This document shows, piece by piece, positions 8,350 to 62,453 of a stretch of DNA of 64,000 bases (the stretch's first letter is position 1; each line of letters begins with the position of its first letter). The position numbers and the translations under genes were made by a program. The notes beneath the pieces are model-generated. The model was given only the letters and a program-made list of their open reading frames with translations, was not told where the DNA came from and searched no databases. Source of the DNA: Podarcis filfolensis (lineage: Eukaryota); the NCBI GenBank assembly GCA_964270895.1, contig OZ185442.1; one strand, given 5' to 3'.

Positions 8350-11300
8350 CAATTAACCTTTTGTACACATAATCTGCATGGTTGAAGTGACCAAAGAGTG
8401 TGTATGCGTGTTTAGTGATGATTCTTATCCATCTAAGTTGATGGTGCTACTTGCTCTGGATTAATCAGTTCACAGAAAAAGGATATACAAGTTTAACCAA
8501 TCCAGCAAGAAGTATCCATACATAATGCAGGTTCATCTTCTGGATCTGGATCTGTTTACGCTGCAAAATTGCTACATGAGCAGATCTTTTGTTTGGATGC
8601 CAGCACCCAGCTATACATATAGTTCCAGATATTGGATTGGGAACCATGCACGCAGTGCCCAGCGCTCCATTGCTGATTGAATAAGCATTAGTACAGTGTG
8701 GTGTGGATAGGATATTCCTTCCCATCCATCTTGTGTGATGCAGATGGAAACGCAGAATGCCCATCCCTTACTTTGAGTCTGCACATATCTATTACCTGCA
8801 TGCTAATTAATTGCGTGCCATTATATTTGAAGTTTGAATGCACAAATAACAATGTAAAAGCTGGATTATTTAAGAAAAAGCAAACAGGTGTATGCACACA
8901 TCTATATGATCTGTCTACAGAGAGAAATTAAGGCCAGCATCCATAGAACGGCACAACTGGTTCCTCTTACCCAAGGAAGTTTGGCATGCTAGAAAGAAGT
9001 CATTTTTGAAACTAAATAGTTTGTAATATGACACGGAGGAGAAAATTTTGCTGTTTCAAGAAATAAATACTGTAGTCCAGAATCCAAGCAGGGACCCACC
9101 CACAAGCCATTGAGCTCAACTCTTCGGATGCTGGCTTATAGGGATAAAACCTTCCTCTGTTTACTCATTATTCCATACACTTTTCTGTTCCACGTCTCCT
9201 TGTTTAAACCTCTTACTCCATGCATCAGTTCTGTTGTAGAAAGGTGGAAACAATGGAAACAATAAATAAACAAAACAATAAATACTTTTGCCAGCAATTA
9301 AATTTGAGATTAGCGATGTATTTAGGATGAATATTTTTTATTTCCACCCCACCCAATTCCCATTGGTTTAGAGTAGTTACAATATAAAAATAAATCACAT
9401 TGAAACAATCCTTCTAATGCCCAGTAGAGTAAATACTGGTGCAGAAAGGGTGGAGACTGGAAATGGCATATCCATGCTGCACATTTTAAAAGAGCAGTGT
9501 GTTTCTTTTAGTTTGTTTGGGATGAAATAGAAGAGGGGGCAATACCTCATTGGACCAGCAGTTATAAGGGCATTTTAGCAGGTGCTGCTAAGAACTCCCT
9601 TTCATCTACAAAGCAGTACTTTTAAGCGTTGTTAAATGCAGATTAGAATGTGGAAAAGAGTAATTTTCAAGGTAGCCTGTTCAGGATTTACATTTGGTGG
9701 GCAATTCCAATGCAGGCTGAAGCAGCTCTCCTGGAAACGAACCAAGTCCTCCTGTTAGGTGACTGCCTTGTTTCTTTGGATGGGTGGATTTGTGATTAAC
9801 TCAGCTCCTCTTTCCTACGGTGGTTTATTATTAGCATCTACAGACCTTCCTTTTCCCTTTGAAGGCTGAAATGGGGTGCACATGTACCCTCTTCCCAGCT
9901 TCACTCCAGAAAGAGAATTTCTTCAGGTGAGATCAAACACTATCCAAAAACAGCCATCATCCCCAGTTTGGCTTTTGTTATTATTTTGGAAAATGTCTAC
10001 TATAATAGCCTTGGTTGGTTGGTTCGTTTGTGTGTGTATGTGTGTATGTGTACATTCCATCTTCTGTGACCTAGAGACAGGGAGAAAAGGAGAGAGAGAG
10101 AGAGAGAACATATTAACACCCCCACTTTAAGGCTAGCGGCAGTTAATTTCTGACCTCAGCACTATGGTACTGAATCAAATAATTGCACTCTTTCTATCCC
10201 ACCAACTCTTATTTTTTCCTCTTCTTTCTCTCTCCCCCCCTCTCCTTCCCTCTCTGCCCCATGCATATTCATCTATTTGCCCCTCCATCAATCTGATATC
10301 TATCTATATTACACCATATATACCCCTCTCCTCTCTCCTTCTGCCTCTCACTAATATATTTCCATCCCATTCTCTGTCCATCCCTTTCTCCGTCTCTCTC
10401 TCCCCCTCCCTTTCATATATTTTCTGTCTGTCTATCTTCCACTCCGCGCTCTCTCCCCACACATTTCTATCTTTGCATCCATCCTCTATCTACTTTCTCT
10501 CCATGTTTCCAGGGCTGTTGGAATAAAAAAAAAAGGGGGGGGGAATCAAATGATACATGAAAAGAGAGTTCAATGGGACACAGATAATGGTATCTGCTGT
10601 TGATCTCCTTTTGGACCACTTGTTTGAAATGCAGTTGAACAGGACTTGCAAGATCATAATAGAGTAATAAGGGATATGTGCATGGAGGTGGGGAGAAGAA
10701 TCCAACTGCACCCAGAGAGTAAATGGGAAAAAAGAAATATCCTGCGATATTGGGGCAGGACTCAAGTTTTGGGGTTTGGCTGGCTCTAGCTGTGACTCAC
10801 AGCTCATCCACGCAACAGTTTCTCCAAGGGCTGATTTGATGCAGAAGCACCAAACTGGAAGTATGGCGGATGGGGTTCAATGAGGGTTAGTAGTAGCAGG
10901 AGAAAGAGGTACCAACTAGCCTGTAGCATCCCTCCACTCCAGAGGGTTGAAGTCACTTTGGAAAAGCGGTCCTCTAGTTAGACAGGTCTGGCAGGGCTTT
11001 CCCCCCATCCTTGTTGCAAAATCCTACCAAACCCTTTTGGAGAGTGGCAGCAGGGTGGGTGCAGGAGAAATTTGTGTGTCGATGACAGGCGACGAAGCCT
11101 TTAGCGATCCATGTTGGTGAACTCCCTTTTGAAACTATTGTCTGTCTCAAATCTTGCCACCCTGCCACTTCCGAGGAAACAGCGCTGGCTGGGGTTGAGA
11201 CCCCAACTGCGGCTTACACAGACCTGACTGTTGGGGAAGTGGGAGAGAAGGCAGTTGGGGAAAAATAAGGAAACCAACATCGTCTAGAGAAGCAACATCT

Positions 11301-19300: not shown

Positions 19301-22300
19301 TAAAGGTTTCTGGAGACCCTTATATTTAAGGGGCGACACCTATTTCAGAACAGTTGCAGCACCACAGAAAACACCCACACCTAGCCCCAAAGTGTGCCAG
19401 GTTGTTGACATTTTGTGTGGAAGCTGCCAAGTTGACCGAGCAAGCGAGAGACGACAATGCAGTGGCTGCAAGTTGCTTCAGGGTGATGGCTCACCCAGGA
19501 AATCACCAGGAGCAGATATTTGCCTGCACCAATACTTTCTCCCACTTTGAATCTTCCCCACTACCTTGTGCCTTGCTGACAGCACACCTTTCCCAGAGTC
19601 AGGAACCCTCTCTGATCTCTGCATCTGCTTGCATTTCCCATCCTGCTACCTCTTCCAGTTTTCTGCAGTTCTCCTTTCTGTTCAGCGTGGTGGGTCTCCT
19701 TCACCAATTCTTGCAATTTTCACGTGCCGAAACTCTCCCTGTAGCCCCCTTTTTCTGTTCTTTTTCTCTCTTCAGCCCTGTCACAGGCTGGACACAGGGT
19801 ATGTTAATTCTGATAGCTAAGGTAAAATGGCTGCTGTACTGATGTGAACAACAGTGGGCATGAGAGCTGTCACTAGGCTGGTGTGTGTACTAGTGGCAGT
19901 GAGGGCAGCATATGGATAAGTACATTGAGCAGCTACTGGGTTAGCCATCTTGAGACTGATACCCATACCCTGGTTTTAGACAGACTCGTGGTTTGTTTGT
20001 TTTTCAACCAGCGTATTCTGCAACATGTTGTTGATGCAATAACAGTGCATTAGTGGTGGATTTACAAAGGACCATCCACACATTGTTCCTCTTTATTGAG
20101 TGTTCTGTGATACTTCCTCAATGCTGCTGCACTGTTACTACCTGGAGGGGCTATATTGCACAAAAGTGGGACAACCCCCACCTCAAACCCTAGAAAATTT
20201 GTGCTATTAAAAAGTTACAGGATTTCAGCGGTATATTACAGCAGGACATGCACTGATTGGAAACAAAGCAGTAAGGCCATCACAAAACTCTTGCAGGTGC
20301 AAACAGTATTGAAATCATGTGTAACTGCCCTGATACCATCACGTGCCCGAATGGTGTCTTGAGGGGCCTTTTGTCTCTTAGGTCCACTCCCCTCCCTGAA
20401 ATGTATTATAGGGGATAAAAATAGTGGCCCGTCTTATAAGTGTGTTTTGAGAAAAAGTTGCAAAACTGTACCCAAATGCAGTGCTTTCCTTTCCTCCATA
20501 GCAGTGAATTGCTGCTTGTATATTCTGTCCTATAGAACTTGATGCAAATGTGTCTTAATGGTGGGATTCATGTAGATGCATATTGCCTGTATCATTTACA
20601 AATTGCTGACATGTGAGATGAGTTTTGTGGACTTCCATGAAGCTCATAGCATGCTGTGGGGGTGACTTGATTCACACAGTGAGTCCTCTGTGCATACATC
20701 CAATAGATTTTCTAAAACAAGAAAGGATCTAACTATGCCCTAGACTAGAGCAAAGGTGGGCAGAAATTAGTTCAGGATCTTCTAGTAGATCTTTTGGTGA
20801 TTTGCAGTATATTAGCAAGAGTTTCTGACTCCCAGTTGTTTTAAGAATAGCAATAACTAAAGAATAGCAATAACTAAAAAGCTTCTCACCTCCTTACCCT
20901 AATTACGGTGCTGAAACAAAAAACGAGAGGTGGGTGGGTGTGACCAGCAGTGGGTTTTCATGTCAGATTGGTTCAGGTACTGACTGCAAATTCCTGGACT
21001 GAGCATATGCTCAGAGACACCCTGCTCCTCAGTTCTTACTGTATGTCTGCCTCCCTGAGCTTCAGTTTTACGCCAGGCTCTAGTTGGTGAACTTCAGGTA
21101 AAAAGCAAGCAAGCAAGTCTGAGGTCTGCCTACTCCAGCTCTGGAGGAAATGGAAGGAATATGTGACTGCATGACCACAGATTGCACGGATCTGTGAGTA
21201 CAAAAACACATACAATCCTTTGTATAGATTCTTGCAGAACACATGTGGCATGTGTGGGATAGCTCCTTGAGCATTGTGGAAGGGTGGCTGTGCACTGTAG
21301 GCTGAGTCTCTTGGGTATGTGCACGAATGGCTATTGGACAGCCGGTTGCCGATGCCACTTGCTGCTGGAAAACCATACAAGGTGCTCTGGTGGAACAGTT
21401 GCAGAAGAACTGTTGGATTATTGCATGGCTACATGTGCTGGTCTTTATGGTAGAGTTGGTCATGTGTGTGTGAATCGTTGTGGGGTGACTGTGCATTCAA
21501 GTTTTTGGAAATGCACGGTTTTTATTTAATGTGCCTTCAGATTACCTTATTGATGTGGCTAGCGAGTGTTTGCATTCTCACAGTGTTGGAACCTTTTTTT
21601 GCTCCAAACCATCCTCCACAAACTTATCCAATCCTGTTATGTCAGAGTGAAGTCCTTTGTGTATGAACAGCAGAACATTTTAGCAGCCTTGAGACGATGA
21701 AGTTCAAGATCTTCTGTGCCTGTGAGTGCCAGCATATGCAGAAACATGTAGGCTTTAATTGAAGTGGGCAACTGAAGGAATAGTTGTTGCACAGATGGAA
21801 CCAGCCAGAACAGAAGAAGGCAGATGGATTTTCTCGGAAATCGGTGGTTTGCAACTCAAAGGGAGAAATTTGCAACACAATTCCTGCTGTGGGTTTGCAC
21901 ATCACCACCGAGAGTAGGAACAAGTATGGACTGCTTAGTAGAATAGAATTCCCGCAGCAAATAGTTAAAGGGTTTTCTGTTTTGATTTCAAGTCAGGGAC
22001 AGTATGGTCCAGTAGATAACATTGTGATTGTTTATTTACTAGGAAGTCATTATGACAGGTGGGATGTGTGTTTGTGCGGAGAGAGGACTTGCATATTGCA
22101 AGGACTCATGGGGGGATAGTAGTGCTTCTCTTTGTAATGTGTACACACCATGGGTTCCCTGTTGTTGAAGGCCAGGCCACTCAGAAGCAAGGGGATAGGG
22201 CTTTTTGCCCTCAACACAGAACTGTCCCCAGGTACAGTACTTTATTATCCCCTATGGGAGTGAATGGCAGCTGTTCATGTGTGCTGGAGAAAGCAAGGAG

Positions 22301-25300
22301 TTGAATCAAGGCATAATAACTGGGATAGGGGCTAATTCTGCTCCCTGCTCTTGGGAGGGAGCCAAGCTTGCCTCCATAGGCATACCTCCATCCTGGGTTA
22401 GTTAGATCACTTTTGTCTTTGGCTCCTTCCACCACTGGCTCTGGCTCCACCCACCACCAGCATGTGGCCCCTGACAGATTACCCCTGAAGGAATGTGGCC
22501 CTTGACAGAAAAAAGGTTGATTTCCCCTTCTTTTGATGATCAACTGGCTTTTATATCTGCATGCTTCTCTTCCTCCAGGGGACACATGGTGGAGGAAAGG
22601 TGTGCATGGTCTCTCTTTGCACATCTTTTGTCTCCACTCTCACATCATGCGCAAATGCCTTTTTTGCTTGAGCATCTGTGCACTGTGAGCCATAGCAGCT
22701 TGTCTCATGAGTGGCGCTGTGAATGTGGAATAGATGAAGATTGGCTTTACTCGTTAAAAGTCACGCATAAACGATGAGTGAATATAATTTCTATAATATC
22801 AAGTTGTCCTATATTGCAGCGTTGTGACCAAATGAGAATGGAGCACTTTGGGGAATTCAGGTAGTAAGGCATGTAGTAGTAGTGTAAATGGTGCACTTAG
22901 TCTAATGGGTCGCTCTGCAGGTGGGCAAAAAGGAACAGCTTTTATGTTCCAGAACCCCTGTTCTTCTTCATATACACTTTCCGCCCAATCCTATGCAGCG
23001 CCAAATCCCACTTAGCAGAGTGGAACTGTACTCTCAAATAAGCATGCGTAGGGTTGCTGCCTTTGGGTGGCTCTCTATGTTACGAAGCAGACACAGCATT
23101 CTCATGTTTGCCTGGCAAGGCAAAGGGGGAAAGGATGTTTGCAGGAGAAAATCCACGCATGGGGGCTGCTCAGCACTTCTTGCGCCTGTTGATTCTCTTC
23201 TGCAGAGATCTCCTGCTGCTTCCATCCTTTTCCATCCCTTCATCCCTTCCCAGTTGGCCTCTGGGAGCCTGGAGGGAAAATTGACTCATTTGCAGAGAGG
23301 GAAATCAACAGGTAGAGGAAAAACAACAAAGTAAAGTAGACGCACCTCCTTCTTTACCCACTGATTTTCCTTATAAGTGTGTTCCCTGCATTTGTATTAC
23401 TTCAGCAAATTTAGTTTTGGTACTGTGTGTTTTGCCTTCAGGTGAAACCACACCTATGTTGGTACTATTCTTCTGACACATCCCAACCCTGTTGTAACCA
23501 CTTACAGGGACATGTAAAGGAGGGAAGTTAGGGAAGAAAGCTGCAGTGGAGGATGTTAAGACTTTGTACCTTGCCCATTAGATGGAAACAGCAAGGATTT
23601 ATTGCATCAGTTGTTTAAAACATTTATATCTTGGCCCTTTCCATTACTATCAGAACTTCAGTGCAGCTTCCCAAAATCAAAACACTCTGCCAATATAATC
23701 TGATAAAAGCCACAACTAAAATAGAGAGCATCATCATTTGTCAAAAAGTCCAGGCAAAGAAAATTGTTTTTAATTCCTGTTAAAGGGCAGAAGAAAGGAT
23801 GGTAAATAAATGTTTCTGAGGGAGGCATTCCACAGTCTGGAAGCCATCACAGAGAAGGCTCCGCTCCAGATCCCCTTTTGCCTAATCCCGGTGTGCCTGG
23901 AGCAGGGCTTTCAAAGACCATCTTATGGGCAGAAGACAGGGATGTGTGTGTAGAAAGTGGGAAACTGGGAGGCAAATGCTCAAAATGTGGCTAGAGATTT
24001 GCTTGAAGGCTAGAAAGTTCTGCAGACGGTTTGTGAGGTTGACAGGTCTTATGGCCAAATCATTGAAGCAAAGGGTCTCATTCACAGACGCAACTTCTTT
24101 GCCCCCTATGGCAACGGTTCTGTTTTTCCTGAAGTGTGGTTACCATTGATGCCTAATGACTAGCTGTGTAGGTGTGAAACAAGATTGCTGCAGCGATGAG
24201 CAAGATCCAGGGTGGGGGATGGGAGGGAGGGAGGAAAGGGGAAAGTTCCACAGCAAAAATGGTGCATATAAATATCTACAGGACTCCCGCCAGCCTGGTT
24301 TCCCCACCTGCCAATGCTTTGGACTACAACTCCTGATCCATACTATCTAGAGGGCACCAGGTTGTTGAAGGCTGTTCTGTAGTATCAAATATTAGAATAC
24401 CTTTGTTTGAAATTTGGTCGCTTTGTGAATCTGGTTTAATTTCAGCAACGTCCAAGTAAAACGTACCTAGTATTGCAGGCTCATGCTAGGTTGGGGAACC
24501 TGTGGTCCAGCTCTATCAGCATGGTTGATGGCCAGGGACTATGAAAGCCCAACTGGTAATATGAGGGACTCAAGTTCCCAACTCCATGGTGCAACAAATC
24601 AGGTGGTTATTCTGGAGGTAGTTAATTTTTTATTCAGGGAGGGTGAATTAGTACAGGCGTGGCTGTAACTCACTCTACAGGTCAAGGAAAGGGGAGTGCA
24701 GAAATAGTGAGAGTGGTGTGATGGATATACAGTTGGCTTTGTTAGTTCCAGGTCTAAAGCCTTCTCAGCCATGAACCACACTGGGTGACCTTGGACTTGT
24801 CATCGGCTCTGTTGGCACGTCACAATAAGCAAAACAATGACTTACCATGAAAAACCAAGCATGCTCATGCACAGGAAGAAAACAGTGTCCTCTTCACTAC
24901 TCACCTGTTTCTGCTGCTGCCACACTGCTAGGTGCTAAGCCATGGTTTGGCACAGCATTACACCAGAGCCTGGGCTCATGGTTTGCTTCCTCTAAACAAA
25001 CTCTGAGCAGTAAGCCAAAAACAAACTTTGGTTGCAGCTCATGGTTTCTTTTGCAAACCACCCTGTGCTCCTTGGAGGATGGACAGGAAACCAATGTAAT
25101 ATATAGAAAGGATAGAACATGGGTAGGCAAACTAAGGCCCGGGGGGGCGGATCCGGCCCAATCGCCTTCCCAATCCGGCCCACGGGCGGTCCGGGAATCG
25201 GCATGTTTTTACATGAGTAGAATGTGTGCTTTTATTTAAAATGCATCTCTGGGTTATTTGTGGGGCCTGCCTGGTGTTTTTACATGAGTAGAATGTGTCC

Positions 25301-26835
25301 TTTTATTTAAAATGCATCTCTGGGTTATTTGTGGGGCATAGGAATTTGTCCATTCCCCCCCCAAAGAAATATAGTCCGACCCCCGACAAGTTCTGAGGGA
25401 CAGTGGACCAGCCTCCTGCTGAAAACGTTTGCTGATCCCTGGGATAGAACATTGGCAGAGTGTCACTGGAAAGTTCAGGCTGAAAAGGTCTTAGTGAAGA
25501 AAGGGTAAACTTAAGCCACAGCTCTTTGGATGTAAGGCCTGGAAGTTTGAAATGCTGGATTTGAACATTTTTGTGTCTAAAAAACATGTTCAGTGGTTTA
25601 TTTTTGTTTATTTTTTGAATAGGGGGATATATTTTGAATTAAGGCGTGGAAGCTGAAGGCCAACCACACTGGCTCTATCTTGTAGCATTCTTGAGTCATG
25701 CAAGAGTGTATGTGGGCATCAGCTGCGGAAGGTGTGTGTAGGGCTCTGCCCTCCAGCTCTACTCTCACCAGAGTCTTCATGCATTTTTCTGAATATGCTT
25801 AGAATCGTTCTTGTGAGGATTGTGATTTGGGAACCCTGCATGCAGAGGATTCCTGATTGCCAGAAGGTTTCTTCGTGTATTCAGCCAAACATGCAACTAA
25901 TCCCGTGGTGGGTGGGTGGGTGGGTGGGTATGTAGTCAGTGGGGATAGGGATAGAGACAGGGAAGACTAGTCCAGTTGCTTTTACAGTTGTCTGCTGCAA
26001 ATGAACCTGGTGCAAATGAACCTGGTGTTGGTCTGCCAAAGCCACACCACCCTTGCAGTACTGAGGGCAAGGCTAGTGCCCAGGACCTCCATAGTTTATT
26101 CCCACAGTGTCCTTTGAACAGGCTGAAGAGAGCTACTGACTCGCTCTTTTGTGTTGGCAAAGGGAGCCAGATGGAAAGCTTCAAGGGGTCAGATTAAGTT
26201 CCTGGCCCACCAGTTGTCTACCCCTAGTTTAGAACTTTGAGATCTGACACTTTGGGAAGTTTTGTGGTTAAGAATCTTGGAGCTGGAGCATTTTCATGCT
26301 GGTATGTTGGGAGTGGTGGGTGGGAGGGCCACTGTGAAGAACTGTGGAGTTTTGAAATGCTCCCTTACAGACATTAATGGTAAATCATTGGCTTATCTGC
26401 TGTAATTTGGGAACGGTTTATGACTCAGAAACAACGAAGAAATACTAAAAACAAAACAAAAAACCAACAAGCTGTTAAAATCTCTGTTTTTTAGTAGCTC
26501 AGATCTAGGTTTTTGCTTCTGTAGGCAGGAGATGTAAGGGGTGATGTGGATCATTAAGAGGCTCTGATGCTGAGCTGCCACCACACAGGTGGCTTTGCTT
26601 GGTCGACACTAGGGGCGGGGGTCTAGGCAACCCCCCACCCCAAAATCAATCCTCCCCATGCCTGTTCTAGACTACAGCATGTTATTTAAACACACACCCC
26701 ATACTCAGTTATTGTGTGAAGCTTTAATCCTCTTTACATTACACAATGAGGTTAGATCATGTGGGTTCCTAGCTGCTGTATTAAGAGGGGGACAAAATAA
26801 AGGACCCAGGTATGAAATGGAAAGAACGAACGAAA

Positions 26836-40156: not shown

Positions 40157-43100
40157 TGTGTGAAGTCTCTCTTACTCTGGGACTCATAACCCTCTTATTC
40201 CAGCCCCTGGGCTCTCTAAACTTACATAAGCAGCTGTGGATATGTGCTTTTAACTCCCATACACCCAATTAGTCTAAGCCTAAATTAGTAGAGGGGTGTG
40301 TGTGATTTTCTGGACGGCGCAAGTTTGACTTGAAATGGGTTAGAGCAAAGGTATACAAGATGGGATGTAAGCAATTTTCTGTCTTGGAAAATTGTTATTC
40401 ATGGGCTTGTTAGGGGCATAGATTGTAGGTGTGTCTGGGTGGCCATGTGTCACAGTGTTCCTGGATGTGGGTGGGCACAATTGCTTTCTTGTGTATTTTA
40501 GGGGCTTTGCCCCTGGGCAAAGTCTGGCCTCTTAGCTGCCAATCCTGAAGGCAAAAGTGGGATGTGGATAAGCAGAACATGTGGCAATGAGACTTGGCAG
40601 CTGGTGAGCATGAATTGGGGCCTTTGCGCTTCAACCCTCACTCCAGAGTGGCTCTCTGGCAGAACTAGCTGCTGATCTGAGCTGTGAATACAAATGGCTT
40701 GCTCTCACGTAGACATTGCATATAAGGGGTTCATGGAGAATAAAACTCTCAATGGCTACTAGCCATGATGGCTGTGCTCTTTCTCCATTGACAGTGGCAG
40801 TGATGCTTCTGAATACCAGTTGCTGGAAGCAAGAGTGCTCTCTTGTGCTCAGGTCCTGCTTGCAATCGTCCCAGAAGCATCTGGTTGACCACTGTGAGAA
40901 CAGGATCCTGGACTAGATGGGTCATTGGCCTGATCCAGCAGGCTCTTTTTACGTTATTATCTTGCATATAGTAAATAAATGATCTCAGGTCAGACTACTT
41001 GCATTACGAAAACCTCTAACCAATGATAAATCCATAATTATCACTGTCTGTATTTCTCTGTTTTTTCTTTCCTTCCTTCTCACTTTTAACAACTCCCCCC
41101 CTCACCCCATCCCAAGCCATGTATAGCTTTACCTGCAGCTCCAGATAATACTTTGATACATTTGATGAAGTGTAGGTTCGGTCATAATAAATGTACTAGT
41201 CTTTAAGGAGCCACAAGACTCTTCATTGTTTTTGCTGCAAGAGACTCGCACAGCTACCCCTCTGAAAAAAGCAAAACTCAGTGTACTCCTGGCTGTCCAA
41301 ATGTGTGAGACTGTGAGTAGTAGTGTTTGGTGGATGCACTGATGCTTGTGTGTGTGTGTGTGTGTGTGTGTGTTTGTGCATGTGTCACATTGCTGAGAGC
41401 GAATGTGATGGTCATCATGTGCAAGGGAGAGCTGTTGGGTGGGACCGTGCTGTCTCTCAGACTGGAACAGGCCACATCGCCACAGGTGAGTGTGAGAACT
41501 GGTGGCATGCTGCTTCCCCCCAGTGGTGAGTTGGCAAAAATGCAGAACCAACTGCTAGCATCCAGCAGCAGCTATGTGTTGTCTTACTTACTTAGGTTTT
41601 ATGGGGCTTAGAGCTTATCCACATTTACCTTTTGCCCCACTTATTCCAGGCATAGGTCCATGCTTTCAAGCGTTGTGTCTGATTGAGTGCTAAAGAGCGG
41701 GCTTTTGCAGGGAAAGCTCTGGGACAAAAAAAGGGGTGCTCGGACTCAGAGCTTTAAAGTGTGGACCGTGTCTGGAAAGAGCAGAGGAAAGGTAAGTGTG
41801 GATAAACCCTGAGCCCCAGAATCTGTTTCTAATGCCAGAGGTCAGCCCTAGAGCATATGATGCAATAAGAAAACTGCCTCTGAGTATAAATAGAGTGGTT
41901 TTCTCTCACCACCAGTTAACCACAGCCAGCCCCCACATTTCTGGTGTTTGGGGAGGGTTTCCAGGGTTCATCAGTCTGGAGTCACCCCAACTGTGAAGAC
42001 AGAAAGGTGGTTTTTGTCTCTTCAGGGATAGCTAAACCTGGTTGAGTAGATGCCTCACCATCTTAACATAATAAGCTCCACATTGAGTCTTCCACAATGA
42101 GCTGTGAGGATATTCAGTTAAGAAGACCATCATTATGAGATTTCCTGTAAGACGTAGGATGGGATTAGGATTGCTAGGTCCAGACCCTCAGAGATCACAT
42201 TTACCATTTCAGGGCTGTTTCTCTGTCTTATCATCCAGACAGTCTGAGTCCTGCTGTACCACCTGGGGACCCGAGGCACTTGCCTAGGGCTGTGTACACA
42301 TTACTGGCTTAAAACACAGTTAGGCTGCTTCCCCCCCCCCCAATCAGATCGAAGCTGGTTCTGGTTGGGGGTTTTGGGAATGCATAAGAATGTAGTTTTT
42401 CCTAGGAAATGACAAGGCAGATAAAGAATATCTATGGATTGTGACCAACCTGGTGCGAACGCTGCTTCCCAAAGCAGTGGTGAGGGCACACAGGATGCAG
42501 TGCAAACAGGATTGTGCGTACACAGCCCTGGACAGCATTTCTCCAGCCACCACCAAAGGGCTTCAGTTTCCTTTTCCCCCAGTCCCACATTAGCACACAT
42601 GCTTCTGCTGCTAAGGACATGCCAACCAACAGATAGGGATTGTGACAGCAGCTGCAGAAGGAGTACCTACTAGGCCTGGGACCCAGGTTTTAAGGATTGT
42701 CTGGATGAACAAGTCCTTGACCCAAGAAGACTAAAGTCCACTGAGAGGTATTGGGGGCAGTGGCAAGCTGGAGGTTGATGGGAAATGTATTGTATATCCA
42801 AGGGAGGCCCTAAGGCTCTTGACAAGCTATTGGCTATATGCAGTATTTGAGGTGGGATGTAGGACTGGAGTTGCAGGATCTAGTTTGTGTGTGTGTTTTG
42901 GGGAGAGGGACTGTGTTGCTGTTTTAATCTTTCAGCTAGCATGCCAGAAAGATTATAAATGGTCCCACTCACATTGGGGGTTGGGGCTGGGCATTATTCC
43001 AGATTCAAGAGAAAATTTATCTGTGCTCATGCCCAGGTATGTAGTACAGCATGTGTGAGAGAATGTGGTGCCGTGGTGTGTGCATTTTGCACGAACCCTT

Positions 43101-57670: not shown

Positions 57671-60600
57671 TTAATAGGTAAAAATAAAGGTAAAATATGT
57701 TAATAGTTAATAGGTGAAAAGGGAGGCTGAGGTACCTAGCTATGTTCACTAGCAGCTGCCACCAGAGGGAGCACCGCATCAATTTGCAGTGCCCTTCGTG
57801 AAGAGGGTAGCCGCATTCTGATCTTCACAGTGGTTTGGGAGGTGCAAATCAAGCCAGCTTGTATCAGAATTCAGAAAGAACAAATTCCTGAAGTATCCCT
57901 ATTTATTATGATAGAGGTGTATAAAATTATGCATGGTATGAAGAGAGTGGGTAAGAAACTCACCCCCCCATCATAATACTAGGACCTAGGGCCATCCAAT
58001 AAAGCTACATGTTGGAAGTTTCAGGACAGACAAAAGGAAGTACTTTTTTTCACACAGCATGTATTTAAACGATGCAATTCACTACCAAAGATGTGATGGC
58101 TTCAAACTTAGCTGGCTTGAAAATGGGATTAGACAGATTCATAGAGGATAAGGCTATCAGCAGTGGCGGAGCTTGCTGCTCCGGCACCCGAAGCAGGGCA
58201 TATGCTGGGCGGGGCTAGCCGCCTGCAGGGGCGGGGCTAGCCGCCAGGAGCGCTGACGAGTCTCGGGGGGGGAGGTGCTCTGGCGGCGGGAGCCTTTCAT
58301 GATTAATACACTGATAAGTTTAGGCAATAGGTTTATTAGAGTGAAAAGAATTTGGAAAGGATAGGAAGTCAAGTTTACATTTCATTCTCCTTCTCAGTGC
58401 TCCTCCTTGATTCTCTGAAGACCAGTGGTCCAGAGGGTTGTTTAAATGCCTTTTTACAAAAAGGATTTCCGAATGGCCTGTGCTGTGCTTTGAAATCCCA
58501 ATAAGTGGGGCTGCAAAGGGTAACATGACCTGCCACCCATCTGTCAAATTTTGTCCAGGAGGGTTGGAGAGACAAGGATCCGACCCACTCGCCAGAAAAC
58601 GTTCTCCACCTCTGTTTATCAGTGTGTTTATCTGTCTTAGCTGACCACTGTTTCCTCCAGATCTCCTGTGGTTCTCTAAATGCTGTACTGCAACTCCCAT
58701 CATTCCATGCTAATGGGAGTTGGAGTCCAAAGACATCTGTGGGCCACAGGTTCCCCATCCCTACCCCAGAACCAGCTATGGTGGCTGTAGATGAGTGAAT
58801 TCTAAGGAAAAGTATCATTTCTGCAGTGCCATGAAGTATTATTTACTACATTTCTATTCCAGTCTTCATTTGTAAAGCAACTTACAGGTCCCTCAGGCTA
58901 GTCCTCCCATCAGGTCACTGACCTACCGGTACCTACTTAGCTTTAAAACTCTGTTTTTTTTACAGCCCCTCTATATTTTCTGGTTAAACAAATGTTGCTG
59001 TGTTTTGAAGCACAACAGAAACCTGCAAAACCCATTTTGTCCCAGGACTGGAATCATGAAGTAATTCAATATCCCCCCCCCCCAGTTGATTGATTTCTGA
59101 GTAACTGAAGAAACTTATTTTTCATTTTTCTGGTATAATATATAGCTGAGTGGAAGGTTGGGTGGGTCAGAACCGTGGGCAACTTTGTACTTTTGAAATC
59201 AGTGTGGTAGAGACTCATGAATCAAGTTTGGTTTTGCGGGGGAATTCCCTGTGCCTCAGGCCCAGCAGCAAAACAGGAAGCCAACCTAGCAATGAGTCAG
59301 AGAGATAGCATCAACTTCCAGTTGTTGGGATTTTGGTGCTTGTGTTGCTCTTTGTCCCTTTAGCAAGTCGCTTGCAGGAGCAGAGTGAATTAAACACGTG
59401 TAGAGCTGCTTATTTAGCATAATGTATTCAAGTTGCAGAATTTTTTTGTTTTCCTTGGTGTTGCTTAGCATCACCCAGCACCCTGGACAATGTTCCTCAG
59501 TTCCATTGGGCCATCATCCTCTCCCTGCAGTGACACAGATAGGACTCCGCATTTTCAATGGTAGCCTTAAAACCCGATCCTTTTGCGCTGCCCTGTGAGA
59601 GCTACCCATTGCCATAGCTCTGCTTAAGCGCTTCTTCCAGGCTGGTAGCTCGGATGTTAGGGAAGGGGAGATTAGGGGCACAAGAGAGGGGGTCAGGAAG
59701 CATGGAAGGAGAAGGAGGACAGCATCAAATTTGTGTCTCAAACAAGCAATGTTGAGCTGCAACAGGAGCGGAAGGATATCTGTCACACACAGCTGGAGAG
59801 AGAGTCGTACTGATTCTCTTTCATCTTGTTTTCTCCCTCCAGATCAAAGCTGAAGACCCAACAGAAATTCCTCCAGCTCCAGCCCCAGTCCCGGCTCCCT
59901 CAGCTCAGCAGCCACACCTGCCCCAGGCCCAGCTTATGTTAGCTGGCAGCCAGCTGGCTGGGGTAAGTGGAAGGTCCTGTGGCCAGACATAGATTACGGA
60001 GTTTGGCTTAAGTGGCCCAGGGGGTGGCAGGGAGGTGGGTACAAACAAAGGGCTGTTTCCATGACCAGTTTTCTAACAACTGAAAGTCCTGAACTCAAGA
60101 AGCATTGAGCCAACGTTCATTATATAAAAAGCATGGTTATTATCTGATGGGAAGCTTCTCTCTTTCCATATAGTTGTTTCATAGATTATGTAGAAACAAA
60201 TCCAGGTTTGTAAGTATACAGATTAGAGAGAGAGAGAGAGTGTGTGTGTATCTTCTGACAACCACACTGTATGTGTTTATTATTTAGGTGTGCACTTGGA
60301 AAAAATAGTTAAAGAAATCATGTATTAAAAGGCCTGTGGTATCCGTTAATGATTCAGAATAGTTTAAGGGAAATAGAGGGTTGATAGGATGATGGTAGCT
60401 GGGGAGGCATGGCTCCCTGGCACTCTGGGGTGGACACTGAAGGATGATGAAAAGGAAATGATGATTTTGAAATCTCACCCCTCTCCTCTCCTCTTAATGT
60501 GGTAAGTAAAGGCCTGGGGAAGTGGACATTTCTCCAGTGCAGGTGTGGCTTGTGGAGAGGCTTGGATTGAAACTAAATTCTCATTCTGCATTGCCCTAGC

Positions 60601-62453
60601 AAAATGCTGCTTATACCTTCCTCATATAAGCAGTAAGAGATCCAGAATGGTGTTGTGTGTTCATCAGCATTTCTCAGTAATGTGAGAAGCTTAGGTTTGT
60701 CCACTCCATTCCTCCTCCTGTGCCTTTCCCAGGAGAAAATAAACACACACAGGATTTCCTGTCCCTGAACATAATGTGAAAGAACAACAGCCCTCATCTG
60801 CTTAGTGAAATTGTCCTATTGTGTTGAATTATAAGCACAGGCACTGCTGTCAGGAAAGGAGTTGGCAACCAAGAGGAATATATTGCTTGGCTCTCTGCTT
60901 GCTGGGCCTCTCATACCTCTGCTGATGCGCTGGGTGGGAGAAGGACCCAACTAACCAGCTTCTTCCTTCTCTCTGCCTGGTTGATTTCTCCTCCTTCCCT
61001 TTTTCGCCTCTACTCCCCTTTTGCCTGGTCACCCCCTCCTGGCCTGCCATCTGCTATGCTGCCCTTGGTACACCTCTTCTCTGCCTTCCACCAACCCAGC
61101 TTACGGCCCTGATGCCTGCCCAACAGCAGCTGCTTCTGCAGCAGGCCCAAGCGCAGCTCCTGGCAGCCGCCGTGCAGCAGTCCAATGCCGCAGCTGCCGC
61201 AGCCTCCTCTCAGCAGCCTGGGGCTGAGCTGACGGCGCCACAGAACCAGCCCCAGACGCCACAGCTTGCCCTGTCGCAGCCAATCCAGCTCACTGCACAG
61301 GTAAGGGCTTGTGCACGGGAGGCTCAGCTTGCCGGGGGTCTGGCCAGAATGGGTTGCCCAGCATTACACGCTCACCACCACACAGAGAATAGGGCAGAAG
61401 TCAAAGTGTATGACAGGCTGCTCATGCAGACATGGCCTGATCCACGATTGGCATCCATCTGTCTCAGGAGACAATGGAGGGGTGCGTCTTTCTGGGCGAG
61501 GTCAAACTGTTGGAAAGTTGCAGTGCCTGCTGTGGCTCTAGAGACCGATGCGGGAGAGACATGTTTTGTTGCAGCTGGGACAGGTGAAGGCGTTCAGTTA
61601 TGCTGCTGCAGGTGCGCTGCGGCATTTCTTCTCTTATGTAGGGATGTGTATAGAAACTAGGAGAGGATGTGTTTGTTAGATATTATCCTTCGTGAGTTCA
61701 GCAGGCTGCATCCCTTTGTCGGCCAAAAATAAGGAACCTGTTGATAGGTTAGCTTTAACCTTTAGTTTTAGTAATGCAGGATGCTTTACTGCAGACTGGA
61801 TTTCCTGTTATTTCCCCCTTTTCTCCCTTAAAAACAACAGACACGCCAAACAGTCTTCTTATAAGTAAAGATAGATTTCCTTGCTCAGTTTCACAATAGC
61901 AGTCTTGAGGCAGGCTGAAAATGTAGTTGCAGACAGTAGTTTAGATCAAAATGGAGTTTGAGCTGTGACTCAGATTCAGCACTTGTCCTTCATCCCTAGT
62001 CATTGATGAGGCATCGAAGAGAAGAGGAGAGAGAAATTGGAGATCAGGAATCAGAGAGAGAGCAGGCTGGGAACGTGACCGGCTTATATAGGCTGTGCCC
62101 CTTTTACCTGGCTGTACACAGTGGAAGTGGCTCTCACAGGGAGGATTTTCTGTAGACCCTGTGAGATCCAACTTCCTCTGTGTGTGTCTTTCTAGCAAAC
62201 ACATTGCCACTCGCCATACCTGACCCTGGTCAACTGTAGGAGAATCCTCAACACCTTCACCGGACTGCAGTCCTCAGCATTAAACTGGCATAAATTTGCA
62301 TGGTAGATATACCCACACTCTTCCTCCCACTCACTTCTCTGTTCTAGGACATCCAGCAGCTGCTCCAGCTCCAGCAGTTAGTCCTCGTCCCAGGGCACCA
62401 CCTCCAGCCGCCTGCACAGTTCCTGCTGCCACAGGCCCAGCAGGGACAGCAAG
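12802..62453 (+). CDS. POU2F2: POU domain class 2 transcription factor 2 (Oct-2), 5' part of a multi-exon gene; the POU/homeodomain exons lie beyond the window
   Basis: The spliced translation ...[22 protein letters not shown]|[12 protein letters not shown]|[19 protein letters not shown]|IKAEDP...[13 protein letters not shown]|...|[35 protein letters not shown] matches remembered human Oct-2 (EIRMSKPLEAEK..., [18 protein letters not shown]..., [32 protein letters not shown]). All introns are GT-AG with compatible phases. Confidence 0.97.
15040..15170. promoter_or_regulatory. Candidate intronic enhancer
   Basis: CpG retention, GCTAATGA (15100-15107), perfect palindrome AAATCGATTT (15146-15155). 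Confidence 0.4.
16345..16620 (-). mobile_element. CR1 LINE 3' fragment
   Basis: TAGTAGCCATTGATAGCCTTATTCTCCATGAATTCATCTAA...TTCCTTTTGTCTGTCCTGAA is the typical CR1 ORF2 end and 3' UTR, reversed. Confidence 0.75.
17411..17546. mobile_element. hAT-type MITE, near-perfect 136-bp hairpin
   Basis: 58-bp inverted arms with 1 mismatch, 20-bp loop, perfect 8-bp TSD GAGTAGAC (17403-17410 and 17547-17554). Confidence 0.92.
18330..18847 (+). promoter_or_regulatory. Candidate internal promoter with three reverse CCAAT boxes and a possible non-coding first exon
   Basis: ATTGG at 18498 (full NF-Y consensus CTGATTGGCC), 18567 and 18608. GC-rich. Donor-like GAG|GTGGGT at 18848. Confidence 0.4.
23800..24070 (-). 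mobile_element. Old L2 LINE fragment
   Basis: GGAGGCATTCCACAG.CTGG.AGCC..CACAGAGAAGGC is the reversed 'AFSV.AP.LWN.LP' motif. Confidence 0.55.
25118..25441. mobile_element. hAT (Charlie-like) non-autonomous element with an internal 63-bp duplication
   Basis: TIRs CATGGGTAGGCAAACT and CGTTTGCTGATCCCTG, 8-bp TSD GGATAGAA on both sides, direct repeat at 25204-25266 and 25275-25337. Confidence 0.85.
26838..26875. repeat. (AAAG)n microsatellite
   Basis: Read directly from the sequence. Confidence 0.95.
26880..27070. promoter_or_regulatory. Homeodomain/POU-motif-rich candidate enhancer
   Basis: GATTGATCA (26887), TAATGAGGT (26968), TAATGAAGT (26992), TAATTA (27013). CpG retained. Confidence 0.5.
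27974..27987 (+). promoter_or_regulatory. Possible CTCF site CCCCCTGAGGGCGC
   Basis: Close to the CTCF core CC(A/G)C(C/T)AG(A/G)(G/T)GGCGC, within a small CpG-rich patch (27950-28060). Confidence 0.4.
28618..28755 (-). mobile_element. tRNA-derived SINE (squamate family with CR1-type tail)
   Basis: Reversed head GATTGAGCCTGGGACCTTCTG...CCACTGAGCTATAGC and body TTGTCTACACTGACTGGCAGCGGCTCTCCAGGGTTTCA. Confidence 0.7.
30611..30667. repeat. (AAAG)n microsatellite
   Basis: Read directly from the sequence. Confidence 0.97.
31540..31720. promoter_or_regulatory. CpG-rich candidate regulatory element
   Basis: CpG cluster with TATCGATCG (31629-31637) and TGTCA; no repeat hallmarks. Confidence 0.4.
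33495..33631 (-). mobile_element. tRNA-derived SINE with CR1 3' tail, diverged
   Basis: GTAGAGTTGGAAGGGACCCTGAGGATCATCTAATCCAACC followed by a reversed tRNA-like head. Confidence 0.65.
35305..35382 (+). mobile_element. CR1/SINE 3' tail fragment
   Basis: GCAGGGGGTTGGACTAGATGACCCTTGGGGTCCCTTTCAAC. Confidence 0.7.
36982..37630 (-). pseudogene. Decayed PNMA-family / Ty3-Gypsy gag capsid-like coding remnant
   Basis: Minus-strand frames give, in PNMA order, [32 protein letters not shown] and SQA, versus remembered PNMA1 TFDPW, VIRILKSNNPAITTAEC, YQNPGEKLSAY and NQA. Several stops and frameshifts are needed. Alignment by eye only. Confidence 0.5.
38640..38900. promoter_or_regulatory. CpG-island-like candidate enhancer or promoter about 4.6 kb upstream of exon 1b
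   Basis: Dense CpG with TAATAAT, SOX-type ATTGT and ACAAT, TATTGATCG (38743), CGCGTCAC and CTCATTA. Confidence 0.55.
40094..40162. repeat. Compound (CT)n(GT)n microsatellite
   Basis: Read directly from the sequence. Confidence 0.97.
40745..40950 (+). mobile_element. CR1-type 3' UTR fragment
   Basis: AATGGCTACTAGCCATGATGGC...GGATCCTGGACTAGATGGGTCATTGGCCTGATCCAGCAGG. Confidence 0.7.
41348..41372. repeat. (GT)n microsatellite
   Basis: Read directly from the sequence. Confidence 0.95.
41611..41809. mobile_element. PIF/Harbinger-like MITE
   Basis: 22-bp TIRs (19/22 match) with TNA-type flanks (TTA / TGA). Confidence 0.65.
42287..42528. mobile_element. PIF/Harbinger-like MITE (related copies near 30340-30465 and 34638-34940)
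   Basis: 14-bp TIRs GGGCTGTGTACACA / TGCGTACACAGCCC. The TSD is not clean. Confidence 0.55.
43479..43506 (+). CDS. POU2F2: POU2F2 proximal first coding exon (1b): MVNSGLWAA + G, probable ortholog of mammalian MVHSSMGAP exon 1
   Basis: Kozak gccATGG, 28 coding nt (the length of the human exon 1 CDS as I recall it), donor CAG|GTAAGT at 43507, phase 1. Aligns codon for codon with M-V-H-S-S-M-G-A-P. Confidence 0.75.
45440..45750. mobile_element. AT-rich squamate DNA-transposon-like repeat (same family as 63620-63975)
   Basis: Shares blocks TCTCA.TTT.TCATTTTTCCA.TCTTAA and AATGGCTGTGTTT with 63620-63975. Confidence 0.55.
46028..46284 (-). mobile_element. CR1 LINE 3' end, 5'-truncated
   Basis: Encodes the CR1 ORF2 C-terminus [51 protein letters not shown] and ends in the ATTCT-type tail. 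Confidence 0.92.
46353..46503 (+). mobile_element. Full-length tRNA-Lys-derived SINE with CR1 tail
   Basis: A box TGGCTCAGTTGG, tRNA-Lys-like GTAGAGCATGAGACTCTTAAT, degenerate B box, CR1 tail ending ATTCTATGA. Confidence 0.85.
47090..47790 (-). mobile_element. L2 LINE 3' fragment interrupted by a younger insertion
   Basis: GGGAGAGCATTCCACAAACGG.GCTACCAC (reversed LWN.LP motif) and GGCCTGGAAACTAATTGGCAGCCAGTGCAG. Confidence 0.65.
47254..47443. mobile_element. hAT-type non-autonomous element nested in the L2
   Basis: Perfect 8-bp TSD CCACCCAC (47246-47253 and 47444-47451), degenerate CA...TG TIRs. Confidence 0.75.
48961..51000 (+). mobile_element. Decayed, internally deleted Ty3/Gypsy LTR retrotransposon (sushi/Mart-like lineage)
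   Basis: Gag remnant [15 protein letters not shown] (49502), CCHC knuckle [14 protein letters not shown] (49757-49798), protease [12 protein letters not shown] (49996), pol start [23 protein letters not shown] (~50408), [11 protein letters not shown], RNase [13 protein letters not shown] / AYDSRKLTP (~50710-50815). No RT catalytic core is seen, and the ends are approximate. Confidence 0.85.
51385..51810. mobile_element. Palindromic non-autonomous DNA element
   Basis: Outer arms ...CATGGCTTCTCCCAAAGAACCCTGGGAA and ...AGAATTCTTAGGGGGAAGCCGTGA are inverted, with an extra internal arm. Confidence 0.7.
52012..52300 (-). mobile_element. L2 LINE 3' end
   Basis: Alignable to 54185-54450, with the reversed RAFSVVAP.LWNALP motif. 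Confidence 0.85.
52560..52945. promoter_or_regulatory. Candidate intronic enhancer ending in a composite AP-1/heptamer/MORE/octamer site
   Basis: CpG-retaining unique-looking block. TGACTCA 52919-52925, CTCATTA 52922-52928, ATGCAAAT 52934-52941. Confidence 0.5.
54120..54470 (-). mobile_element. L2 LINE 3' end with (TTA)n/(TCA)n tail
   Basis: Minus ORF ...[46 protein letters not shown] is an L2 ORF2 C-terminus. Microsatellite tail at 54123-54184. Confidence 0.9.
55479..55544 (+). CDS. POU2F2: POU2F2 exon 2 ([23 protein letters not shown])
   Basis: Polypyrimidine tract + TAG acceptor, 66 nt, phase 1-1, donor CAG|GTAGCA. RMSKPLE matches Oct-2. Confidence 0.95.
56891..56925 (+). CDS. POU2F2: POU2F2 exon 3 ([12 protein letters not shown])
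   Basis: ttgctttcag| acceptor, 35 nt, donor CAG|GTGAGA. The peptide is identical to the human sequence. Confidence 0.97.
57049..57105 (+). CDS. POU2F2: POU2F2 exon 4 ([19 protein letters not shown])
   Basis: Strong polypyrimidine tract + CAG, 57 nt, donor AAG|GTAAGT. Aligns with human NPQNKTSPFSVSPTGPSTK. Confidence 0.93.
57626..57667. repeat. (TA)n microsatellite
   Basis: Read directly from the sequence. Confidence 0.97.
57757..57773 (+). promoter_or_regulatory. Probable CTCF site TGCCACCAGAGGGAGCA
   Basis: Matches the CTCF core CCACCAGRKGGCRC with one substitution (C>A). Confidence 0.55.
57905..58160 (+). mobile_element. CR1 LINE 3' fragment
   Basis: ATGATAGAGGTGTATAAAATTATGCATGG...TTCAGGACAGACAAAAGGAAGTACTT...TTAGACAGATTCATAGAGGATAAGGCTATCA. 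Confidence 0.8.
59843..59962 (+). CDS. POU2F2: POU2F2 exon 5 ([40 protein letters not shown])
   Basis: ttctccctccag| acceptor, 120 nt, phase 0-0, donor GGG|GTAAGT. IKAEDP and [17 protein letters not shown] match Oct-2. Confidence 0.95.
61100..61300 (+). CDS. POU2F2: POU2F2 Gln/Ala-rich cassette-type exon ('5b'): [27 protein letters not shown]...SQPIQLTAQ
   Basis: aacccag| acceptor, 201 nt (67 codons), phase 0-0, donor CAG|GTAAGG. Homologous to the Oct-1 segment [24 protein letters not shown]...LSQPIQIAQ. Confidence 0.9.
62348..62453 (+). CDS. POU2F2: POU2F2 exon 6 ([36 protein letters not shown]), glutamine-rich activation region
   Basis: ctgttctag| acceptor, 106 nt, donor AAG|GTAAGA. Near-identical to human Oct-2. 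Confidence 0.97.

Follow-up and report, generated by a model that had tools for sequence, protein, structure and literature searches.

Exons whose branch point lies far upstream of the acceptor have been described by Gooding et al. (2006, PMC1431707), among them PTBP1 exon 11, alpha-tropomyosin exon 3 and GABBR1 exon 23, all with an AG-exclusion zone (AGEZ) above 100 nt. According to these authors, a long AGEZ is the mark of an exon with a distant branch point and a tendency to be alternatively spliced, and every such exon studied was PTB-regulated; AGs less than 12-15 nt from the branch point are bypassed, and between one-fifth and one-half of the AGEZs of at least 100 nt are estimated to reflect true distant branch points. 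Distal branch points are also enriched upstream of skipped exons, and the introns that carry them splice late, although Taggart et al. found that, despite the distal branch point, productive splicing often proceeds via one at the usual distance from the acceptor (PMC5378181). A second related system is formed by neural exons on which SRRM4 and PTBP1 act as antagonists (Raj et al. 2014, summarised in PMC10551640 and PMC5247714). There, SRRM4 opposes PTBP1 by way of UGC motifs that it recognises downstream of the pyrimidine tract and ahead of the exon, in a programme that consists chiefly of microexons of 3-27 nt.

Oct-2 occurs as distinct lymphoid and neural isoforms, and exon E5b of the mouse gene, Pou2f2, is neural-specific (Harris et al. 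2019, PMC6561314). The literature searched offered no explanation of the splicing mechanism that chooses mouse E5b or the lizard exon 5b considered below, and combining Pou2f2 with Ptbp1, Srrm4 or Rbfox in the search returned nothing on this exon.

Exon 5b of the lizard gene

Our analysis covers a window of 64,000 nt containing what we take to be the Podarcis filfolensis POU2F2 (Oct-2) gene, on the strength of short peptide motifs of mammalian Oct-2 and of the exon order. The exons and splice sites concerned are the following.

59843-59962, + strand: POU2F2 exon 5, 120 nt, phase 0-0
61098-61099, + strand: AG of the 3' splice site of exon 5b, context CCCAG/C
61100-61300, + strand: exon 5b, 201 nt, 67 codons, phase 0-0, Q- and A-rich
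61301-61360, + strand: donor region of exon 5b, CAG/GTAAGG, then GCTTG (61307), (T)GCACG (61312), GCTTG (61327), GAATG (61347) and four G-runs
62348-62453, + strand: POU2F2 exon 6, 106 nt

Exon 5b is in frame between exons 5 and 6, both its splice sites are canonical, and its donor is strong, matching the consensus at eight of nine positions. Its placement makes it the positional counterpart of mouse neural exon E5b, which likewise sits between exons 5 and 6, keeps the frame and adds sequence upstream of the POU domain (PMC6561314). The two differ in length, 279 bp in the mouse against 201 bp in the lizard, and in their flanking introns, which measure 288 nt upstream and about 15 kb downstream in the mouse (coordinates of PMC5989265) against 1,137 and 1,047 nt in the lizard.

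The pyrimidine tract and a candidate distant branch point

Three further features lie in the upstream intron, directly before the acceptor of exon 5b.

60949-60955, + strand: candidate branch-point sequence AACTAAC, branch A at 60954, five of six U2 pairs
60957-60958, + strand: AG bounding the tract on its 5' side, 3 nt past the candidate branch A; 5' edge of the AGEZ
60959-61097, + strand: AG-free tract, 139 nt, 81% pyrimidine

The first-pass annotation of this DNA had pointed to the tract and the acceptor AG, and its coordinates are exact to the base; we also recovered at their positions the AACTAAC motif, the branch A, the 145-nt distance and the AG 3 nt later. By the Gooding definition, the AGEZ of exon 5b measures 141 nt, as against 45 nt in exon 2, 31 nt in exon 3, 38 nt in exon 5 and 42 nt in exon 6, and it thereby falls within the length range of the long-AGEZ, distant-branch-point class (at least 100 nt). 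Intervals of at least 139 nt between AGs are rare on the + strand of the whole window (4 of about 4,650). Upstream of the zone the AG frequency is normal, with AGs at 60957, 60942 and 60939 and 1-10 AGs per 50 nt across the remaining intron, while the pyrimidine fraction rises from about 0.48 to 0.86 immediately downstream of AACTAAC.

The absence of AG from the tract results from its base composition (A10 C61 G17 T51, or 80.6% pyrimidine). When its 139 nt were shuffled, 25% of the shuffles were AG-free (P = 0.25; 1.2 AG expected), and AG, GA and AA are equally scarce in the tract, so that a specific avoidance of AG was rejected. The unusual feature is thus a pyrimidine tract of this length abutting the acceptor, rather than the avoidance of AG as such. 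A repeat origin was likewise rejected, the tract showing no tandem repeat and no second copy within the window. Away from known exons, the window has further AG-free runs that are CT-rich and 100-350 nt long.

Exon 5b resembles the exons of the Gooding class in that a high-scoring branch sequence stands at the zone's 5' end, the pyrimidine tract adjoins it, AG is found upstream at normal frequency, and regulatory motifs are located inside the zone (PMC1431707). It differs from them in three respects: its branch point is a predicted one, its zone is at the short end of the range, and its candidate branch A is placed before the zone, with the bounding AG 3 nt further on. The Gooding-class exons are alternative; for exon 5b, alternative use is known in the mouse counterpart and would be expected in the lizard.

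The candidate branch A at 60954 precedes the last base of the intron by 145 nt (the acceptor by 145-146 nt), and its U2 pairing is the top score between -187 and the acceptor. Sites as strong as the AACTAAC at 60949 occur 1.1 times per kb, and among the 20 AG-free runs of at least 80 nt in the window, only the exon 5b tract has one at its 5' edge. Each of exons 2, 3, 5 and 6 offers an A preceded by U at -2 at 15-60 nt from the acceptor (in exon 5, a conventional TACTGAT motif at -30), whereas the A's at this distance from exon 5b (-51, -44, -30 and -28) all lack it. Since exon 5b, unlike its neighbours, has no such adenine, a distant branch point at 60954 is the best reading of the sequence, and from one situated further upstream (at 60925, for example) the first AGs to be reached would be those at 60939, 60942 and 60957. 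As regards the distant branch point that the annotation had proposed, the motif, the adjoining tract, the long AGEZ and the lack of a nearer conventional candidate all hold in silico, and from these we infer that the branch is used.

It is conceivable that the whole arrangement is a by-product of composition, that is, a CT-rich intron end served by a degenerate proximal branch (A 61070, 61072 or 61056, or a non-A), with AACTAAC present by chance or as a non-productive 'holding' site. Vertebrate branch points are degenerate, so that the branch might yet form at -28, -30 or -44. The share of AG-free shuffles and the CT-rich runs found away from exons agree with such an origin, as do published data, in which 50%-80% of long AGEZs have no distant branch point behind them (PMC1431707) and the productive reaction often takes place on proximal branch points (PMC5378181). 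Yet none of the proximal A's has the U at -2 that every neighbouring exon offers, the onset of the tract coincides exactly with the strong motif, and an equally strong site within 40 nt of the zone edge would be expected by chance only about 4.5% of the time. We consider a compositional by-product somewhat unlikely.

Our preferred reading, to which we give about an even chance, is that the tract forms an extended 3' splice-site region belonging to a cassette exon of lizard POU2F2, in frame and 201 nt long; this exon would be the counterpart of mouse neural E5b, and the distant branch point would make its inclusion conditional. U2 snRNP would pair with the near-consensus AACUAAC at A 60954 and U2AF65 would sit on the pyrimidine tract starting 5 nt downstream; the AG 3 nt past the branch would be sterically bypassed, and the second splicing step would occur at the next AG, 145 nt off. 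This long, weak arrangement of branch point and acceptor would leave inclusion of exon 5b conditional, and the 140 nt of CU-rich RNA in between could be bound by repressors, namely PTBP1/2, or by activators, namely SRRM4 on the UGC motifs. An RNA structure shortening the distance from branch point to acceptor was unsupported by folding (z = -1.67, not significant).

A splice-site layout of this kind is already known and is typical of regulated exons; since it is textbook, the gain lies in a mechanism for one gene and not in a new principle. As an element on which the choice of exon 5b could turn, a distant branch point followed by a regulatory tract of 140 nt is concrete and testable, and it predicts that the neural isoform would be disrupted by a variant creating an AG at any position of the tract.

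Candidate regulators of exon 5b

Three elements within the tract bear on the factors that may act on it.

60965-60978, + strand: CU-rich element CCTTCTCTCTGCCT, copy 1 of a 14-nt direct repeat, adjoining the candidate branch point; best PTB-type site
61045-61084, + strand: cluster of five UGC motifs, at -55, -48, -43, -40 and -18, SRRM4-type or MBNL YGCY-type
61073-61086, + strand: CU-rich element CCTCTTCTCTGCCT, copy 2 of the repeat, 86% identical, 14-27 nt from the acceptor

The tract had been described as CU-rich, with UCUU and CUCUCU motifs for PTBP1. Such motifs are present (two UCUU, one CUCUCU and three UCUCU, besides the two 14-nt CU elements), but their counts are at or below what composition predicts, and enrichment in PTB motifs was rejected, neither UCUU nor CUCUCU exceeding expectation. 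PTBP has indirect support from the mouse, where Pou2f2 is listed, at the level of the gene, among those whose splicing is altered in pro-B cells lacking both Ptbp1 and Ptbp2, and where the spacing of a PTBP1 iCLIP cluster fits the 3' part of E5b (PMC7058386). A Bayesian-network analysis of mouse splicing did not call the 279-nt Pou2f2 cassette a target of Ptbp, Rbfox, Nova or Mbnl, and Pou2f2 does not appear in the supplementary data of Li 2014 or of Linares 2015.

In the full model of the first-pass annotation, PTBP1 would repress exon 5b in B cells, and relief from PTBP1 in neurons would be joined by RBFOX activation via a TGCACG 12 nt into the downstream intron. This motif is found where it was placed, at 61312-61317, and together with two GCUUG and one GAAUG its GCACG brings the first 50 nt of the intron to four RBFOX-like sites, against 0.7 expected (P about 0.004-0.015); 1.5% of 60-nt windows reach four such motifs, and a count of four is likewise found in the 60 nt downstream of exon 6. 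GCACG is a lower-affinity primary RBFOX motif, and about six secondary motifs are needed to equal one GCAUG in reporters. RBFOX-activated exons are expected to have (U)GCAUG within about 300 nt downstream, whereas no canonical GCAUG occurs within 990 nt downstream of exon 5b, the first GCATG being at about 62297-62298, 997 nt into the intron. The RBFOX half of the switch keeps its GCACG and three secondary motifs but lacks a nearby GCAUG and is matched in motif count after exon 6. For the combined model speak the CU-rich element beside the branch point with its second copy near the acceptor, the gene-level pro-B-cell splicing change and the iCLIP cluster, and the downstream sites; against it, in addition to the RBFOX points, stand the unremarkable PTB-motif counts, the already strong donor and the negative calls for the mouse cassette. 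We judge it unlikely.

UGC motifs are more frequent than expected, with 7 in the tract against 2.8 (P = 0.013) and 5 in the last 60 nt before the exon against 1.2 (P = 0.002), and they lie between pyrimidine tract and acceptor, as in SRRM4-activated exons. This enrichment makes SRRM4 a rival activator at least as plausible as RBFOX. The same architecture could accordingly be read with SRRM4 (nSR100) or SRRM3 as the neural activator, acting on UGC and counteracting PTBP1, with little or no role for RBFOX. For RBFOX to be abundant, e11.5 is an early stage. The spinal cord of the mouse includes E5b as early as e11.5 (PMC6561314), and exon 5b shares with the exons antagonised by SRRM4 and PTBP1 a pyrimidine tract that is interrupted by G and also contains PTB-type CU motifs, with UGC ahead of the acceptor. 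Conversely, SRRM4 prefers microexons (PMC10551640) and exon 5b has 201 nt; UGC is also part of YGCY (MBNL) and CUG-type motifs; and the literature searched contained no link between Pou2f2 and SRRM4-dependent splicing. We put SRRM4 forward only tentatively.

A broader and more doubtful proposition is that lizards and mammals share the tract as a conserved switch, by which PTBP1/2 would bar an ancestral Q/A-rich exon from lymphoid Oct-2, and loss of PTBP1 together with SRRM4 at UGC would restore it in neurons. If so, the presence in Oct-2 of a glutamine-rich activation segment like that of Oct-1 would depend on one RNA element.

Inclusion of exon 5b could also be coupled to the choice of first exon and promoter, a distal neural start going with 5b and a proximal B-cell start without it. 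Coupling would act via elongation kinetics or co-transcriptional loading, the slow distant-branch-point intron merely supplying the time window. We think this quite improbable, as cell-type-specific factors explain the same correlation equally well. The correlation itself comes from the mouse, where spinal isoforms join the distal exon E1X and E5b and B-cell isoforms lack both (PMC6561314), and the late splicing of distal-branch-point introns (PMC5378181) is consistent with such a time window.

Exon 5b and its mouse counterpart

Exon 5b of lizard POU2F2 (61100-61300) measures 201 nt, or 67 codons, and is of phase 0-0, and the reading frame is kept whether the exon is included or skipped. The flanking exons, together with exons further upstream encoding SKPLE and a 12-residue peptide, carry what we take to be mammalian Oct-2 peptides, an identity that rests on peptide resemblance and exon order and not on a database match.

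Features around exon 5b (window positions)
59843-59962, + strand, exon before 5b, phase 0-0
60949-60955, + strand, AACTAAC, candidate branch motif (branch A = 60954)
60957-58, + strand, AG after the branch motif
60959-61097, + strand, AG-free tract, 139 nt (A10 C61 G17 T51, 80.6% pyrimidine)
60965-60978, + strand, CU-rich repeat copy 1, CCTTCTCTCTGCCT, adjoining the candidate branch motif
61073-61086, + strand, CU-rich repeat copy 2, CCTCTTCTCTGCCT, adjoining the acceptor
61098-99, + strand, acceptor AG of exon 5b
starting 61301, + strand, donor CAG/GTAAGG of exon 5b (slash, exon end), strong, 8/9 consensus positions
61312-17, + strand, TGCACG in the downstream intron
62348-62453, + strand, exon after 5b

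The sequence description in the first-pass annotation was borne out exactly: AACTAAC, the nearby AG, the 139-nt AG-free tract and TGCACG all lie where it had placed them. In mouse, E5b is an extra in-frame 279-bp exon between exons 5 and 6 that marks spinal-cord isoforms, B-cell isoforms being without it (PMC6561314). A Pou2f2 cassette of the same size (279 nt, gene coordinates 19711-19990) is recorded by Weyn-Vanhentenryck et al. (PMC5989265, Supplementary Data 9), with 1 cDNA for inclusion versus 20 for skipping. By these coordinates mouse E5b starts only 288 nt past exon 5 and ~15 kb before exon 6, whereas both lizard introns flanking exon 5b are ~1.1 kb.

The purine-poor tract and the candidate branch point

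On the + strand of the window, 4 of ~4,650 AG-bounded intervals are at least 139 nt long. Under the definition of Gooding et al. (PMC1431707), the AG-exclusion zone (AGEZ) of exon 5b spans 141 nt, and those of exons 2, 3, 5 and 6 span 45, 31, 38 and 42 nt. Yet the real signal is the long purine-poor tract running up to the acceptor, not AG avoidance as such: 25% of shuffled versions of the tract likewise lack AG, and AG, GA and AA each occur in it about once at most. The tract is not a tandem repeat, which rules out that origin; as for a dispersed repeat, a second copy is absent from the window. The window also contains CT-rich runs of 100-350 nt without AG that lie away from known exons, and its longest AG-free stretch lies at 10160-10510 (351 nt, 79% pyrimidine). 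A tandem duplication occupies 25204-25337 in the large first intron (71-nt unit, 1.9 copies, 98% identical).

Tract and acceptor together (60959-61099) stay open in the reading frame of exon 5b over all 141 nt (47 codons, 0 stops), owing to the scarcity of A. Were the AG at 60957-58 to serve as acceptor, the protein would thus gain 47 residues and not be truncated.

Every A from -187 (counted upstream of the exon 5b start) to the acceptor was scored for pairing with the U2 branch-recognition sequence. The top-scoring A was 60954, with 5/6 U2 pairs in a yUnAy context, followed inside the zone by 61031 (-69) and 60984 (-116), and none of the A's closest to the acceptor in the scanned zone (-51, -44, -30, -28) has a U at -2. 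Upstream of each of exons 2, 3, 5 and 6, one or more A's at 15-60 nt from the acceptor carry a U at -2 (exon 5 has a perfect TACTGAT at -30), whereas exon 5b lacks any such A. With the 50-nt bin beginning just past AACTAAC, the pyrimidine fraction rises from ~0.48 to 0.86. Sites matching 60954 in strength have a density of 1.1 per kb, and among the 20 AG-free runs of at least 80 nt in the window, the exon 5b tract alone has one at its 5' edge. For a branch point on the 5' side of 60954 (e.g. 60925), the AGs at 60939, 60942 and 60957 would come first, which makes 60954 the furthest-upstream branch that could serve the exon 5b acceptor. No significant RNA structure bridging the distance from branch point to acceptor was found (fold z = -1.67).

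AGs less than 12-15 nt from a branch point are bypassed (PMC1431707), and at least ~8 nt are reported to separate a branch site from its 3' splice site (PMC5378181), which backs the earlier premise that an AG this near would be unusable. Skipped exons are enriched for long AGEZs and distal branch points (PMC1431707, PMC5378181), in agreement with the further premise that such features mark regulated exons. The exon 5b layout belongs to a well-described class, and its best-supported explanation is a putative distant branch point. An AGEZ of at least 100 nt is found in 838 of 67,334 human introns, with only one-fifth to one-half estimated to be true distant-branch-point cases (PMC1431707), and a proximal branch point often carries productive splicing despite the presence of a distal one (PMC5378181). 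The dominant branch probably lies at least 69 nt upstream of the exon 5b acceptor; that it is 60954 itself we put at an even chance or slightly less.

Candidate regulators of exon 5b

A PTBP1-off/RBFOX-on switch had been proposed for neural inclusion of exon 5b. The UCUU and CUCUCU motifs invoked for PTBP1 are present in the tract (2 UCUU, 1 CUCUCU and 3 UCUCU), mostly within a CU-rich direct repeat whose two copies are each 14 nt long, but their counts are no higher than expected from composition. Both CCTTCTCTCTGCCT and CCTCTTCTCTGCCT pair a PTB-type motif with a UGC motif.

PTBP control of exon 5b has indirect support from mouse. Among the Pou2f2 entries of Monzon-Casanova et al. (PMC7058386), the gene appears in sheet Genes.AS.dKO_cl_i_ii, which lists genes with a splicing event altered in Ptbp1/Ptbp2 double-knockout pro-B cells at gene level, naming no exon; its mRNA level increases by log2 0.75 on single and log2 0.95 on double knockout; and PTBP1 iCLIP gives four CDS-labelled clusters. 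We compared the cluster spacings with the mouse exon coordinates (PMC5989265). With the most upstream cluster placed in the last ~100 nt of E5b, another falls in the exon starting at 42458; if that cluster is instead set in exon 5, a second "CDS" cluster would end up within the intron preceding exon 6. The spacing thus fits a PTBP1 cluster in E5b, a fit that is suggestive only. The 279-nt mouse cassette has Mbnl, Rbfox, Nova and Ptbp target flags all of 0 and is assigned to no developmental module (PMC5989265). These zero flags are weak negative evidence on regulators. That survey mainly profiled cortex, a tissue in which Pou2f2 expression is low.

UGC occurs 7 times in the tract versus 2.8 expected (P = 0.013) and 5 times in its last 60 nt versus 1.2 (P = 0.002), at -55, -48, -43, -40 and -18. 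SRRM4 counteracts PTBP1, and the UGC motifs that it recognises lie between pyrimidine tract and exon (PMC5247714, PMC10551640). Judging from this enrichment, SRRM4, which the first-pass annotation did not consider, is an equally good candidate activator of exon 5b. A literature search for Pou2f2 in combination with Ptbp1, Srrm4 or Rbfox gave no account of how exon 5b/E5b is controlled, matching the earlier statement that no such mechanism was known for POU2F2.

RBFOX control is weakly suggested. GCACG is a lower-affinity primary RBFOX motif, GCUUG and GAAUG are secondary, and in a reporter about six secondary copies match one GCAUG (Begg et al., 10.1101/840272). The TGCACG put forward as an RBFOX site does lie at 61312-17, and the first 50 nt of the downstream intron hold one GCACG, two GCUUG and one GAAUG (4 versus 0.7 expected, P ~0.004; a count of 4 is reached in 1.5% of 60-nt windows across the locus), but no GCAUG occurs downstream of exon 5b before 62297, ~1 kb away, and the 60 nt past exon 6 contain as many RBFOX-like motifs. 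Four G-runs lie in the same stretch at the start of the intron after exon 5b. A perfect octamer, ATTTGCAT (an Oct-factor binding site), at 62294-62302, 51 nt upstream of exon 6, overlaps TGCATG, the sole canonical RBFOX hexamer of this intron. The same intron contains a 14-nt inverted repeat at 62128-62170 (93% complementary, 15-nt loop) that may form a hairpin.
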